Assembly (NCBI GenBank): GCA_000388065.2
Contig: KB932208.1
Source: Fonticula alba ATCC 38817
Lineage: Eukaryota > Protista > Nucleariida
Direction: 5' to 3' (one strand)
DNA: 64,000 nucleotides
The notes below the pieces were generated by a model, which worked only from the letters and a program-made list of their open reading frames with translations, did not search any database and had not been told where the DNA came from. The position numbers were made by a program, and so were the translations under genes. The stretch's first letter is position 1. Every line of letters starts with the position of its first letter. Positions 48,923 to 61,826 of the stretch are shown here, piece by piece.

Positions 48923-54158
<5,236 letters not shown>

Positions 54159-55072
54159 CCTGGCAGGAGAAGGGGAAGAGGGGGAAGGGGGGGNNNNNNN
54201 NNNNNNNNNNNNNNNNNNNNNNNNNNNNNNNNNNNNNNNNNNNNNNNNNNNNNNNNNNNNNNNNNNNNNNNNNNNNNNNNNNNNNNNNNNNNNNNNNNNN
54301 NNNNNNNNNNNNNGGGGGGGGGGTGGCGAGAGGGAGAGAGGTGAAAGGGAGAGGAGGGGAGGAGCCGGCCCGGAAGAGGGAAGGGGCTTCGCCAGGGGAC
54401 GACGGGGAGTGGGAGCTGAGACGAGGGGGGCGAGCGGCACCAGGGACAAGGGAGGTGGGTGCCAGACAGGCGCCGCCGGTGCCTGCGGACGGCCGCCTTT
54501 TACGGCACTGCCTGGGCCCATTCTGCGCACCAGCCCTGGCGGAGGGAGGAGCGGGGGGGGGGGGGGGGGAGGGGGGGACGCGACGCACCGAGAGCCCAGC
54601 TACCGCCGCTCCGGGGCCGAGGGTCGCACCGCAGCCGGAGTCCGTGGGCGGGATCTTGAATGGGCGTTGGCACATGCGGATCCCATGTGCTGGTGGCCGG
54701 CCGGAGGCGCGGGCGAGGGGGATCCCGGCCTAGCCAGATGGCGGCGGCGGCGGCGGCGGCGGCGGCCCGAACATTTCTTTTTGGGGGTTGGTGGGGGGGG
54801 GGGGTCCCCCGGTTCCGGGCGCGGCGGTGGCAGGGGCTCGCGGCCGGCGACCCTATTCATCAGTCCGCGCGTGTCTGGAGCTCCGCTCCTCGCAGCGTGG
54901 AGCGAAAAGGGCAATCACCCTCTCGACCTTGATCTCGATTGCCGGTGGAAGCTTTCGCCCCTCTTCTCCCCTTGTTGCTTGCCCTCCCCCCCCCCTCCCC
55001 CTTTCCGCGCCCGCCGTCGTCCTTTCCCCCGGATCCCCCCCTCCCTCCCTAACGGCCCACCTTGCGTCGGAC

Positions 55073-57925
55073 ATGGCCACTCGCCGGCTCCTGCCCGTCG
55101 GCAGCGGACCGTCTGCCCTGGGACGGCTGTTGACCTGCTCATTGGGTCACTCTCGACCGACGGCACTGTTCTCCGGGTCTCCCCTTGTGCGGTCCTTCGC
55201 CACGGGTGCCGCTCCAATGGTCGATGCTGGTACGCCCCCTGACCCTGAGGCTTTCGCACTCGATCCCCACTCAGCCGGCCCTCTGACACATTGCCTTCGC
55301 ACTGGTGGATGTGTGCAGCGCCCGCCGCCGAGGCTGCCCTTCCAGGGTCAGCCGACGCCGCTTCTCCCCCGGTGGCCCGGGCAAAGAAGCCGGCCAAGCC
55401 CCCGAAGCCGGTTCCTGTCAAGATCACCCTGCGCGATGAGGACCTCCAGGAGCAGTTTGTTCGGGGCTTCGGCAACGGCGGCCAGAAGGTCAACAAGACG
55501 TCCAGCTGTGTGATTCTGTCGCACGCGCCGACCGGCATTGTCGTCAAGGTGTGTCCGCTGCCTTTTTCACGCTTGTGCATGCACTTCCCCCTGTGTGCTT
55601 ACCTCCTCCTCCCCCCCCCCCCCCCACACCGACCTCCCCTCCATTTCCCATGGAATGGCAACACAGTGCCAGAAGACCCGGTCCCGGGAGCAGAATCGCA
55701 AGGAGGCTCGGAAGATCCTGATCGGCCTTCTGGACCAGCGGATCAACGGAGACCTCTCCAAGCAGGCGCGCAAAATGGACAAGATTCGGCGGCGGAAGAG
55801 CCGCGCCGACCGCCGGTCCCGCGCCAAGTACGACACCGCCACCGCGGCCGCCGGAACGGCCGCCGGGCAGGCCGCCTCGGTCTCCGACGCCCGAGACCAT
55901 GACAGTGATGACGATGGCGGGGAGGAGGAGTACTCGGACACGGAGTTCGACTCCGACTTCGACTCCGACTCCGACTCCGCCTCGGGCCCTGACAGCGATG
56001 CTGAACGGGCGGATGGCAGGTCATCCGGGCCGATGATCCGGACCCCCGGCGCGGCATTTGCCCCTTCCGCTCCTGTGTTGTTTTCGCACCCGCCGCCGGA
56101 CCGGCAGGACTCGGCCATCACCTCGGGTCTGGCCCAGAGCCCAAGCGAGCAAGCCGATGCCTCGGACTCCGAGGTGCCCTGGGATGCGCACATTCCCTGG
56201 GACGCGCACCTTTACTGGGATGCCAATGTCGAGACCCTCGCGGGCTCTCCTCCTGGGCCGACACCATCCGCGGCCGACCAGACACCGGTGCCTGTGGAGG
56301 GGTCTGGCAAACCGCTCGACATGGTGCCGGAGATGCTGCACTCCATTTTGGGCGAGGCGGCCAGCCGGGATATCCCCGAGCAGGACTTCAACCTGGCGGA
56401 CTTCCTGTCCGAGGAGGACCGCTTGCAGCTGGCCCAGCTGCAGGCGCGCGAGGACCAGGACAAGAAGGCCATCCAAGAGTTGTCATCTTTGTCTGACAGT
56501 CCGGAGGCCCTCCTCCAGGAAGCCATGCTCCAGGTAAGCCAGATATATGCCTCGCAGCTGGCTGCTGCCCACAGCTTGGTCGAGGTTCTGCGTGAGGCTC
56601 TGGCCCCCCTGGACACAGGCATTGCCCCAACCCCGGCGGCCGAGGATGTCGAGGCGCCCATCTCGCTGGATCTGCTGATGGAAATCCTTGCCCTGGTGGA
56701 GCTGATGGACTCGCCTGCCCGGGCGGCGGAGCTGCATTTGGCGAACCAGCGCGGGCGACGGACCTCTTCCTTGCCGAATATCGAGCTCCCCCGGGACCTG
56801 TCTCCGGAGGAGCAGGAGTTGGTGGTGCTCCTGCCGGTCATCCATGACACGCTGGTGGAGCGGGTCGCCGAGAGGCTGGATGCCGGTGCCGGGAGGAACT
56901 ACTCCGGCGAGGAGCTTCGACAGCTCTCGGAAAGCTTGGACTGGGAGCGAGGCGAGCGGGCCCGGCGTCTTGAAGCCCAGCGCCAGAAGGAGCAGGCCGC
57001 CCTGCAGGAGAAGGAGCGCCGGGCAAAGGAGGCCTCCGAACGGTCGCGCAGAGGGCCGCCTGTCCGTGGCGCCAGGCGTCTGGACCGGAATCAGCACACG
57101 GCTCTGGAGGCTGCGAAGCCGGGCCCCAGCCCCCATGGCGTCTCACCGGAGGTGCTGGACATCCTGTCGGGTGCAATGCGCGGCGGCGCCGGTGGTCGAA
57201 TGGGCAACTGGCCCGGGCTGCCTCCTGGCATGACGGCGGTCATGCCCCCGCCCGCTCCTCAGATGCCGCCGTCCAGTCCCTTGACCGGCCCTCCGCGGTC
57301 GGCCTCCAACCGGCAAATGGTCGACAATTTGCTGCAGCAGGCGCGAACCCTGCACCAGGTTGGGAAGGGCGGCCAGCGTGGCGGCGCCAGCGGCGGCATG
57401 CGTGGCGGCGGCGGCGGACGCGGTGGCGGGGCGCGCGGCGGCGGTGGCGGCCGGCGCTACTACAGCACATCTGCCAGCGCACCCCCCCCTTCGGAGGGAT
57501 ATGTGCTCCGTCTTCTGGGGACGCCAACCTGCCAGTTGTGTGACCTATCGGCCGAGGCGCTGGTCGCTGCGGCGCACCGGGTTTTCCCTCGTCCGGCTGA
57601 CGCGCCGCCGGCTCGCTTCGGCTGGGAGTACCGGTGGCCGGAGCACGCCCCGGTGCATCTGGAGCGGGTGGACCTGACGGCGGAGCACTTCCGCGGGACT
57701 CCCCTCCAGCGGCGGCTCATCCTCCATGTGCCGGTGTTGCTTTTGGCCGACGCCAAGGCCGACTCGGATGCCTGGACGCCGGCCTGTCGGCTGTTCCCGG
57801 ACGCCCTGGCTCACGATCTCGGCCTAGAGGTGTCCCGCCATCGGGTATCCGAGGAAGTGGCGCGCACGCTTCTTGAGACCTTGGCTGCTGGGGGCTCCAG
57901 CGACCCGGATGCCGAGGTGGACTAG
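55073..57925 (+). CDS. MTRFR: Mitochondrial GGQ peptidyl-tRNA hydrolase MTRFR/C12orf65-like, fused through a long linker to a C-terminal glutaredoxin-like DUF836 domain (3 exons)
   Basis: Presequence ending VRSF|A. RF-1 region LRDEDLQEQFVRGFGNGGQKVNKTSSCVILSH..CQKTRSREQNRKEARKIL, with GGQ at 55477-55485. The last exon (55667-57925) is one open frame ending in LRLLGTPTCQLCD..VPVL..HRVSEE. Confidence 0.88.
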
Positions 57926-58371
57926 CTGCAGGGCTGTCGATTTGTGGCGTGCCGTTAGCTGGTAGGCCAGAGCGGAGAAGGGGTGGGACCCCCCCCCCGC
58001 CCTGTGCCAACATCCAGGCCTCTCCCCCCCCCCCCCCCCCCTGTCGCACTTGATGACCATAGAATAGAGTGGAGTGGGCTGCATGAGTCAAAAGAAGCAC
58101 ATGCGGCTTGAGAGGCCGGTGGCTGGGGAATTGTCTAAGTGTAGTAGCGCGCGTGCATGGCGCCAGGAATGTGTACAGAGGAGGGTGCGGCCGGGTGGGC
58201 GGGCGGGAGGAGGACGTGGAGCCCGCCTCCCTCGGGGTGGCAAAGCAGCGCAAGGGGAGGAGAGGGAGAGGGGATATGCGCATGGGGGCAGCGCAGGGAG
58301 ATCCCTCGCCAGCAGCAGACCGTGGCATCGTGAAAAGGGCGACCGGACAGGAAGAGGCACTTTGGGAGCCC

Positions 58372-58973
58372 CTAGAAACGAGCGTTGTTACGGTCAATGT
58401 AGTTGATGAGCTCCTTGACAGTCATGGAGGTGGGGTTGATCTTGGAGATCTGGTTGTCGGCTGCCATTTCGGGGAAAGGGTGGCACAGGGAGGACGAGGC
58501 GTTAGCGGATGGACGAGAGACGGCCTCAAGAGAACGCGGAGAGCGGAGAGCGGAGAGCGAGGGGGAGGCGGAGAAAGGCATAGCCGAGGGCACAAGAGGC
58601 CGGGAACGTACTCCAAACAACCTCGATCACCGGTTCAGACATGTCGCTCTTGACAACGGGCTTGACCTCGCAACGGCCGTTGGTGTTCCGGCACTTGTCA
58701 GTCATGACCTGAGACAGGAGAGCGCTGCGGTTGCGCGGCGTGGCAGCAGGGGCGGAGCGAAGGCGAGGAGGAGGGGGACAAATAGTCAGACAGGGAGGCC
58801 GATTGGAGCAAGGCTGTATGGCAGACGGGGAGGAGCATGGGGGAGGGGCTCCCTCGGGGAGGAGGTCACACTTACCGGGTGGATGTCGACTTGGGATGGA
58901 AAGGAGAAAAGGTGAAAGTGATCGACTTCATGTTGTTCAGGCGCAACAGGTACGAGGGCTTGATAATACCCAT
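58372..58973 (-). CDS. MRPL53: Mitochondrial ribosomal protein mL53 (yeast MrpL44-like), 3 exons
   Basis: The spliced product is MGIIKPSYLLRLNNMKSITFTFSPFHPKSTSTRALLSQV..EPVIEVVWTDNQISKINPTSMTVKELINYIDRNNARF*. It matches the mL53 pattern (FxPF..R..L..P.+.V.+.D....+.P..M...EL). Confidence 0.85.
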
Positions 58974-59620
58974 GATGGGAAGGGGGGAGGGCAGCCGAGC
59001 CTGAGCGAGCAGACAAAAGCAAACAAAGGTGGCGGGAGGGGAGAGGGGGAGAGGACTACTTTGCGGAGTGGAGAAGGTGCCCCATCTGGCAGCCGGCTGT
59101 TGAATTTGCTCGTCGACGTGGGTAGATCGACGCACACCAGAGGGCACCCAGGGGGGGGGGGAGGGAGGTGAAGCACAGGCATGTCGGCCCTCCGCGACGC
59201 GAGGGGCCAGGCCGGCGACGGAGGGCCGCGCACACGCCCGCAAGAGCGCCCAACTGCCGATGGATGTGGCCCTGGCTTTCCCTAAATATTGCACGTGATT
59301 TCCAACTACCAGCGCATAGCATTGGGTTGGGGTTTACGAAAGTGGGCGCGGTGCCGCAAAGAGAGGGGAGTCTATTGTACGGTGTATTGGGTTGGTAGGT
59401 GTGCCCCACAGGAGGTGGGTGCATCTCTCCCCTTCAGAGGGAGGGAGCTGGCTGCGCTCTGGCAGGGAGGAGGGGGGNNNNNNNNNNNNNNNNNNNNNNN
59501 NNNNNNNNNNNNNNNNNNNNNNNNNNNGGGGGGGGGGGGGGAGGAGAAGGCGAGCGCACGCGTGCGCGCACGCATACGCACCAAAGAAAGGGGAAGGGGC
59601 GTGCCGGTGTTTGGCGATTA

Positions 59621-61726
59621 TTAGTGGGCACCGCCGCCAGTCCACTCGATGGTCTTCAGGTCAATGCCCTCCTGGATCATGTCCCACAGGGGGCTCATCT
59701 CACGGAGCTTGGTGACGTTATCGATGGTCTTCTGCAGGCAGAACTCGATCTCGGCATCGGTGGTGAAGCGACCTGCATTCCGGGGGGCGGGGGATAAGCC
59801 GAGGTTAGTGGGGGGGAGAAGGGAGGAAAGCCCAGCGAGAGGGGGAAGGGGAAGCAGCACATGGAGGCGCGCTCCGTCCTCGGCCTCTCCCGCCGCCCGC
59901 GATGAGCGTATGTATATGCATGTGTGCGTGTGTGTGTGTGTGAAAAACACACGCAGGGAGGTGGGAAGAAGCATGTGCCCCGGGAACGCACCGATGCCGA
60001 AGCGGATGCTCGAGTGGGCCATATCCTCATCCTGGCCGAGGGCACGCAGGACATAGCTCGGCTCGAGGGAGGCGCTGGTGCAGGCCGACCCCGAAGAGAG
60101 GGCCATATCCTTGAGGGCCATCAGGAGGGACTCGCCCTCGACACAGGAGAAGGACACGTTCAGGCAGCCAGGCAGCCGGATGGGCGAGCCGGCCTCCTGG
60201 GGGCCATTGACAGCGATGTGGGTGAGACCCTCCTGCAGGCCGGCCAGCAGCCGGGCGGACAGCCGGGAAATGCGCTCATGGTCGTAGTCCATCTCGCGGG
60301 CGCAGACATCGGCCGCCGCGCCGAGGCCGACCACCAGCGAGGTGGGCACGGTGCCGCTACGCACACCGCGCTCCTGGCCACCACCGGACTGGAGGGCCTC
60401 AATGCGAACACGCGGGCGACGGCGGACATACAGAGCACCAACACCCTTCGGGCCGTAGATCTTGTGGCCACTGATGCTGAGTAGATCGATGTTCATCTTC
60501 TGCACGTCGATCGGGATCTTGCCGGCGGCCTGGGCGGCGTCGGTATGGAAAAAGACCTTGTTCTCGCGGCAAATCTGGCCGATCTCCGTCAGGGGCTGGA
60601 TGACACCAATCTCGTTGTTGACGGCCATGATGGACACGAGGCAGGTCTCCGGGCGGATGGCAGCGCGCAGGGCCTGGACATGGGCATCCACCGAGGAGAG
60701 GGGAGGGGAGGGGAGGGGAGGGGCGGAGGGGGCATGAGTACAAGGCTCGGAGTGAACACCAGAGGGAGGAATCGGCCGAGAGCGGCCGGGCGAGAGGCGA
60801 CCGGTGGCACGCACATCCAGGTCAATCAGGCCGTTGCTCTGCACCGGGAGGTAGGTCACCTCGAAGCCCTCCTGCTCGAGGACACGGCAGCTGTCCAGCA
60901 CACACTTGTGCTCGGTCTGGGTGGTGATGATGTGGTTCTTGCTCTTCTTGTAGAAGCGGGCCACACCCTTGATGGCGATGTTGTTGGACTCGGTGGCGCC
61001 GGAGGTGAAGACCACCTCCTTGGGGTCGGCGGCGCCGATCAGCGAGGCGACCTGCTCGCGCGCGGTCTCCACGGCCCCCTCACTGTCCCAGCCATAGGCG
61101 TGGGTGCTGGAGTGGGGGTTGCCATAGAAGTGCGACGTCATGTAGGGGAGCATGGCATCGAGGACGCGGGGGTCCTATGGATGGCGGCGGATGGGTGGAT
61201 GGATGGGTCGACGAACGGGTGAGGGAAAGCATGGAGAGGGCTGGGAAGGCAGCCGGGCCGACGAGGGGGGCACCGGGGGACATAGCAAGAGAAGGGGGCA
61301 GGGGGGGGGGAAGGGGGAGGAAAATGCTAACACACCATCGGCGTGGTAGCCTGGGCATCCAGGTACAGGGGGAGAGTGGTCATGTCGCTCTGCTCGCGCG
61401 AGGAGATGTCCTTGCGCACGGTGGGGATCCCATAGGTGCCAGCACCACCGCCGTAGTTCTGAGTGGCGAAGGAGCTCGCCCGGTCAGATGGCCGAGGGGC
61501 GGCCGAAACCCCAGTAGAGTCTGTCCCGGGAACAAGGGGCAGCGGGGAAGACGAAGGGCGGAGGGGGGGAGGGGGGAGGGGGAGGGCGGAGGGTGAGCTT
61601 TTGGATGCATGAAGAGGGAAGACACCGGTGGGCAGACGCACAGGCAGCGACGGCACGAGGGGTCGCCGAGCGGAGGGTAGCCTGCGCAACGATGCGCTGA
61701 GCAAGACGGCTGCCGCTCGCGCGCAT
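59621..61726 (-). CDS. NFS1: Mitochondrial cysteine desulfurase (5 exons)
   Basis: Motifs [46 protein letters not shown] (PLP lysine) and [17 protein letters not shown] (catalytic Cys). The presequence starts [11 protein letters not shown]. Confidence 0.98.
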
Positions 61727-61826
61727 GACGTGGGAAGAAATCATCTTTCAGGGGGAAGGAGGGGAGGGGCGATGCATGGCGAGAGGTGAGCACCTGGTGG
61801 GACACAAAAGGGTGGGGCATGGAGGC

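Follow-up and report, generated by a model that had tools for sequence, protein, structure and literature searches.

The window analysed here, a 64,000-nucleotide stretch of contig KB932208.1 from the nucleariid Fonticula alba ATCC 38817, contains on its plus strand, at 55073–57925, the public gene model H696_04936, which is recorded as a 'hypothetical protein' of 881 amino acids with RF-1 as its sole precomputed domain, and on which a literature search found no paper. This model is a real lineage-specific gene fusion, in which one open frame within one spliced mRNA region encodes four parts in order: a putative N-terminal mitochondrial presequence, a GGQ peptidyl-tRNA hydrolase domain of the MTRFR (C12orf65) type with its basic tail, an orphan stretch of about 500 residues, and a divergent C-terminal domain that is very likely a CxxC thioredoxin fold and probably of the DUF836/Glrx-like family. 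Sequence features at the junction support the presence of a presequence-like segment carrying a motif for the mitochondrial processing peptidase (MPP) and Icp55 directly before this last, glutaredoxin (Grx)-like domain. The protein may thus resemble the composite mitochondrial precursors of fungi and plants, which are imported whole and then divided.

A transcribed gene fusion

Our rebuilt model has three exons on the plus strand, and its translated length equals that of the public 881-residue protein. Exon 1 (55073–55229), defined from the sequence, its translation, a charge and motif scan and a donor joint in the RNA contigs (55228 to 55318), contains the start codon and the putative N-terminal mitochondrial presequence. 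It is followed by a GT..AG intron of 89 nucleotides (nt) (55230–55318), the joint of which appears in RNA run X1 as a skip after 55228/9. Exon 2 (55319–55548) encodes the first half of the RF-1/MTRFR domain, including the GGQ codons at 55477–55485, as indicated by the Pfam RF-1 match of the exon-2 piece (E 1.4e-12) and by alignment to human C12orf65. The second intron, also GT..AG, comprises 118 nt (55549–55666) and holds a C15 run detected with Tandem Repeats Finder (TRF); its joint is found in RNA run X4 (skip after 55546/8). Exon 3 (55667–57925) is the last exon and provides 752 codons, ending in the stop codon TAG at 57923–57925, beyond which the 3' untranslated region (UTR) reaches at least 58013, as seen in an RNA contig covering 57839–58013. 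The RNA evidence consists of four small contig sets, runs X1–X4, derived from two samples. Since both predicted splice joints are present in these contigs, the transcripts are spliced.

Across exon 3, the RNA contigs follow the genome sequence without a single joint, insertion or deletion between 55665 and 57909; examples are the contigs 55681–56887 and 56861–57909 of run X3, and 56846–57909 of run X1. There is therefore no hidden intron that would truncate the release factor or skip the linker, and the possibility of a cryptic intron terminating the MTRFR part early is ruled out. A merge of two genes through an annotation or assembly error is likewise ruled out, by the frame without a stop together with the genome-colinear RNA contigs. 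The initial annotation had described a last exon that stays open for about 750 codons after the MTRFR domain and had asked whether RNA covers 55667–57925 as one exon. The 752 codons are open in one frame in a region of 68% GC, they are transcribed, and they show in that one frame, across the whole exon, a coding-type excess of GC at third over second codon positions (GC3 > GC2), which is weakest at 57167–57540, in the low-complexity junction. Contigs of this kind cannot prove that one molecule spans the whole gene, and 5' ends are not visible in them; an exact-sequence look-up returned the genome record only, with no assembled full-length transcript of H696_04936.

Two local features of exon 3 are recorded separately. 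At 56587, the genome has T where every RNA contig has C, a synonymous change (GTT to GTC, Val436) that is probably a strain difference or an assembly base error. At 56846–56887, contigs of all four RNA runs break, with ends that overlap by 18–27 nt and no loose ends, and no 14-mer of this segment is repeated elsewhere in the window; the break may reflect a transcript boundary, a branch in the assembly graph or a dip in coverage.

Domains of the fusion protein

Judged by its sequence matches, the N-terminal module is a clear MTRFR/C12orf65 orthologue, as the initial annotation had proposed. Pfam RF-1 (PF00472) matches residues 86–180 with 86.3 bits (E 1.9e-24) against a cut-off of 35, and the best matches among PDB entries are human C12orf65/MTRFR (7a5h_C, E 6.4e-25, residues 68–183) and mouse 2rsm (E 1.2e-21), while RF1 and RF2 follow at 1e-13 or worse and ArfB at 1e-4. 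The beginning of exon 3 (55667–55828), which aligns within residues 33–146 of 7a5h_C and to Pfam RF-1, encodes the second half of the domain and a basic C-terminal tail extending to residue 183. The GGQ motif is present as G-N-G-G-Q (55471–55485). The module has no codon-recognition domains, with only about 60 residues ahead of the RF-1 domain, and in the exon-1 product the first 50 residues are basic in character and free of acidic residues, with a motif RSF↓AT at residues 40–44 (here and below, the arrow marks the putative cleavage point). Human MTRFR (7a5h chain C, 166 residues) shares the GGQ RF-1 domain without codon-recognition domains, the basic C-terminal tail and, putatively, the mitochondrial presequence; the Fonticula protein is unlike it in being about 700 residues longer and in having GNGGQ instead of GPGGQ. 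Rescue factors of the MTRFR/C12orf65 type are targeted to mitochondria and act with MTRES1 on stalled large ribosomal subunits.

The orphan middle region (residues 184–679, 55829–57316) shares the coding GC3 pattern and the colinear RNA contigs of the rest of exon 3. It consists, in order, of an acidic D/S-rich tract, W-D-A-H repeats, an acidic helical segment and a P/G-rich low-complexity stretch. No Pfam family matches it at E ≤ 10, and its nearest neighbours in an atlas searched with a protein language model score just 0.42, which is noise. With neither a Pfam family nor an atlas neighbour, the idea of a further known protein in this position, for example MTRES1, was rejected, and these approximately 500 residues are treated here as lineage-specific sequence. 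Short repeats occur within it: (CGACTC)6 at 55948–55983 encodes a D-S repeat in the acidic tract, where the net charge is -14 over 30 residues, and an 18-nt unit present 2.6 times at 56177–56223 (TRF) encodes the P-W-D-A-H-type repeats.

The C-terminal region contains a thioredoxin-fold domain, probably of the Glrx-like (DUF836) type, at 57500–57892, recognised by its Pfam match, its atlas features and its structural match. Residues 729–881 (153 amino acids), searched alone, match Pfam Glrx-like (PF05768) with E 3.1e-4 and 21.4 bits over profile positions 2–70 of 77, and this is the only Pfam family reported for them at E ≤ 10. The motif CQLC (residues 751–754, 57530–57541) is located about 10 residues from where the match begins and is followed by Asp; together with V-P-V near 57728–57736, a putative cis-Pro strand, and the terminal H-R-V helix, it stands where the profile expects it. 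CQLC, the RYYS at 57455–57466 and the in-frame ATG at 57317 all lie where the earlier inspection had placed them. In the atlas search, the top match to the domain scored 0.91 with 184 of 256 features shared, and among the top 100 matches 63 + 29 belong to PF05768 sets, including fungal Mgp12-type clusters of 96–113 residues. A stored ESM model gives template-modelling (TM) scores by hit of 0.78–0.81 over residues 737–874 with Glrx-like clusters of 91–93 residues, thioredoxins scoring lower, and GC3 is strongly coding (0.82–0.92) at 57542–57740.

Several results nevertheless speak against assigning the domain to this family. The score of 21.4 bits is below the gathering threshold of 26 bits; phmmer with the C-terminal 153 residues against 1.84 billion representative proteins returned only the query itself and a tandem-repeat artefact; comparison with PDB sequences at E ≤ 10 gave two chance matches and no homologue; a word-index search with the same cut-off was empty; and AlphaFold2 run without an alignment predicted no confident fold (predicted local distance difference test score of 35). 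In addition, an NCBIfam search found nothing, tblastn against plasmids found one chance match, and, compared with the profile of 77 positions, the domain is interrupted by two insertions. The DUF836 identity suggested by the initial annotation is thus backed by the sole Pfam match and by language-model and predicted-structure neighbours, although the hidden Markov model (HMM) score falls short of the threshold, and membership of DUF836/PF05768 is best described as probable. Yeast Ydr286c/Mgp12 and human C5orf63, members of this family, have the same small CxxC thioredoxin-fold module; they stand alone, whereas the Fonticula domain is fused, contains insertions, remains under the Pfam cut-off and has no relative detectable by pairwise comparison. 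Ydr286c is mitochondrial and has recently been tied to coenzyme Q6 (CoQ6) synthesis (PMC13350749), and human C5orf63 has served as a substrate for mitochondrial import (PMC8664129); neither suggests a role in ribosome rescue.

The junction and the fate of the precursor

The presequence-like leader comprises 49 residues (680–728, 57317–57463), recognised by its hydrophobic moment and by an acid-free run, and ends in R-Y-Y before S729. It starts at an in-frame Met (57317) with an amphipathic basic helix, whose hydrophobic moment is in the top 5–9% of sequence windows and whose net charge is positive. The acid-free run extends from residue 683 to 738 (56 residues, with 8 Lys and Arg, 20 Gly and a net charge of +8), directly after the Asp of M-V-D. 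Within it, the R/G tract is encoded by a degenerate (GGC)n or 21–24-nt tandem repeat at 57368–57457 (TRF). The initial annotation had drawn attention to an R/G-rich, acid-free stretch at this place: the absence of acidic residues is borne out, but the R/G part is largely a triplet-repeat expansion, and the stretch is therefore weaker as evidence of an evolved signal. Ahead of the ATG at 57317, a mildly C-rich patch (57215–57320) faintly recalls the 5' region of the gene, which is strongly C-rich, and gives only a hint of a former 5' UTR.

The leader ends in RYY↓ST (57455–57469), a candidate site for MPP (R-2) followed by Icp55, which is placed in the flexible, Gly-rich junction, with 12 residues between it and the first strand of the fold. 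For MPP, the consensus [R][AFR][FLY]↓[AKLS][HSTQ] has been published (PMC5063612). When position -2 is left free, the relaxed form R-x-[FLY]↓[AKLS]-[HSTQ] has exactly two matches in the 881 residues, namely the N-terminal RSF↓AT and RYY↓ST at the junction, and shuffling gives a chance of about 2.5% for such a match within this 33-residue segment.

These features could be explained if two once-separate mitochondrial genes had been joined by read-through, with the second retaining its own leader; the retained 5' end would then comprise the Met, the amphipathic basic helix, a spacer rich in Arg and R-Y-Y↓S-T. Import of the entire precursor would depend on the N-terminal presequence. Cleavage by MPP after R-Y and removal of the Tyr by Icp55 would then leave a long MTRFR and, from S729 onwards, a separate Grx-like protein of about 16 kDa. 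By analogy with known systems, such import and MPP/Icp55 cleavage of the H696_04936 precursor is the favoured reading, plausible but short of being probable. It is a reasonable reading which fits a known mechanism, and it has two serious rivals.

The analogy rests on a small group of composite precursors, Arg5,6, Atp25, Etp1, Rsm22-Cox11 and rice RPS14, which are cut by MPP after import. Each of their junctions carries an MPP motif as well as a stretch resembling a mitochondrial targeting signal (MTS), and a strong N-terminal presequence is required (PMC8734313). Arg5,6, S. pombe Rsm22-Cox11 and Etp1, and rice SDHB-RPS14 resemble the layout proposed here in having one nuclear gene and one presequence for two mitochondrial proteins, with the MTS-like stretch and MPP motif at the junction (PMC8734313), but they combine other protein pairs; the two parts of Arg5,6, moreover, are successive enzymes in a single pathway, and that fusion is conserved in fungi generally, whereas no functional link between MTRFR and DUF836 proteins is known. 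A close parallel is yeast Atp25 (Rsf and M domain), described as 'two fully functional precursors fused in tandem', and mitoribosome proteins are involved in most of the known cases (PMC5063612). Like Atp25, the Fonticula protein has a putatively mitoribosome-acting factor at its N-terminus, fused to what is probably an unrelated mitochondrial protein in what looks like two complete precursors in tandem, and it has both a putative N-terminal presequence and a candidate internal MTS-like segment ending in a site of the type R-x-[FLY]↓[AKLS]-[HSTQ]. Import assays, digestion with purified MPP and mutation of the site have shown that Atp25 is cleaved (PMC5063612), whereas cleavage of the Fonticula protein is a proposal. 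Atp25 is also conserved among fungi, while the Fonticula fusion is seen in one species, with about 500 orphan residues between its modules and an internal leader that is half glycine.

A number of observations at the junction weigh against processing. The relaxed consensus, with position -2 freed, was applied post hoc, and the strict consensus fits neither RSF↓AT nor RYY↓ST. The initial annotation had considered RYY↓S to be of the same type as the N-terminal VRSF↓A, and both do fit the relaxed consensus, but the loose R-3 pattern on which the comparison was based occurs six times in the protein. Classical presequences are helical, and an R/G tract with 20 Gly among 56 residues does not look like one. 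A crude composition score finds the basic tail of MTRFR more presequence-like than the junction; our home-made hydrophobic-moment and composition scores did not separate the junction from other basic stretches, and little weight is given to them. Finally, a search with exon 3 found no full-length relative in the database apart from the protein itself, and hence no relatives in which conservation of the junction could be examined.

Several of these points also favour the first rival explanation, according to which the fusion is imported and stays whole. A long MTRFR would then keep the Grx-like domain permanently at its C-terminus, and the junction would be a low-complexity linker left by fusion or repeat expansion. 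Most gene fusions do yield uncleaved multidomain proteins, and here the (GGC)n repeat lies inside a P/G/R-rich stretch of about 110 residues with one acidic residue, in a protein where neither the R-3 pattern nor the presequence scores single out the junction. Against this, all described mitochondrial fusions of two unrelated complete precursors are cut at the junction (PMC8734313), RYY↓ST is the sole internal match to the relaxed consensus and is placed in an accessible, flexible region just before the fold, and MTRFR and DUF836 proteins have no known functional link, the yeast member Ydr286c being tied to CoQ6 synthesis. An uncleaved protein is accordingly considered rather unlikely, albeit a prospect to be taken seriously.

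The second rival concerns the transcript: the Grx-like protein could be made, alone or additionally, from a shorter mRNA starting inside exon 3, with translation from the ATG at 57317 giving a 202-residue precursor with its own presequence. The long open reading frame would then represent read-through of two formerly adjacent genes, of which the downstream promoter survives. The textbook amphipathic basic start at this Met, the C-rich patch upstream of it and the weakened coding periodicity at 57167–57540 would all agree with such an arrangement. RNA contig depth is lowest over exons 1–2 and 1.0–1.4x higher in the 3' half, a gradient that is compatible with an extra internal transcript and equally fits ordinary 3' bias. 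However, the contigs run colinearly through 56846–57909, and near 57317 they show neither an end nor a step, within the limits of contigs that do not reveal 5' ends, and the ATG stands in a weak context with C at -3. We regard an internal mRNA, as the only or an additional source of the protein, as unlikely. A third and quite improbable view sees in the C-terminal domain no functional DUF836 protein, but a decaying remnant or a member of another thioredoxin-fold family, in which case a two-protein polyprotein would be the wrong frame: its sub-threshold score, its two insertions, and the empty NCBIfam, homologue and AlphaFold2 results would suit such a view, but the CxxC-Asp, V-P-V and H-R-V elements at their expected places, the coverage of nearly the whole profile, the strongly coding GC3 and the language-model and structural neighbours, nearly all PF05768, oppose it.

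Returning to cleavage of the precursor, its fullest form would hold that an MTRFR hydrolase and a DUF836 redox protein arise from one precursor, split by MPP at a retained internal presequence, and that this is the first such case in a non-fungal holomycote. Taken as a whole, that statement is doubtful. As for the pairing itself, a search with the MTRFR domain found no other protein of 485–1541 residues that shares it, only the query. Within word-based searching and the nucleariid data of the database, the MTRFR-DUF836 combination looks unique to Fonticula alba, in agreement with the initial annotation, which gave no other organism for it.

Gene neighbourhood and significance

Downstream of H696_04936, a convergent gene on the minus strand (58126–58973) encodes the 99-residue mitoribosomal protein mL53 (PF10780). 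RNA contigs show two introns in it, each exactly 151 nt long (58461–58611 and 58725–58875, CT..AC on the plus strand), with no repeat relationship between them. About 110 nt separate the two genes at their 3' ends, with a C18 run (58024–58041) in between. Adjoining mL53, again on the minus strand (59621–61744), is a gene for a 493-residue class-V aminotransferase (PF00266) that may be a cysteine desulfurase of the Nfs1 type, in which case three mitochondrial genes would stand in a row. Upstream, a long minus-strand gene at about 49073–54158 encodes a 1310-residue product with no Pfam family. Assembly gaps flank the locus as N runs at 54194–54313 and 59478–59527, with 11 more N runs elsewhere; the first of these gaps, some 760 nt ahead of the H696_04936 start codon, falls within or beside the 3'-most part of the long minus-strand gene.

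To our knowledge, fewer than ten composite mitochondrial precursors with internal MPP processing are known, all of them from fungi or plants, and several include mitoribosome proteins. The present gain is an improved annotation, with a Grx-like domain that had gone unrecognised in a 'hypothetical protein', together with a testable hypothesis on its processing, in an organism for which genetic tools are lacking. If cleavage does occur, H696_04936 would add a new protein pair and an independent case of a composite precursor in a sister lineage of fungi, as well as a further data point on the poorly understood DUF836 proteins Mgp12 and C5orf63. The fusion appears to retain the leader of the second gene, and in that event it would offer a snapshot of how composite precursors arise. 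A ribosome-acting factor would again front a tandem precursor, as in Atp25, and this would favour the view that mitochondrial factors able to interfere with translation are kept harmless in the cytosol by being fused.

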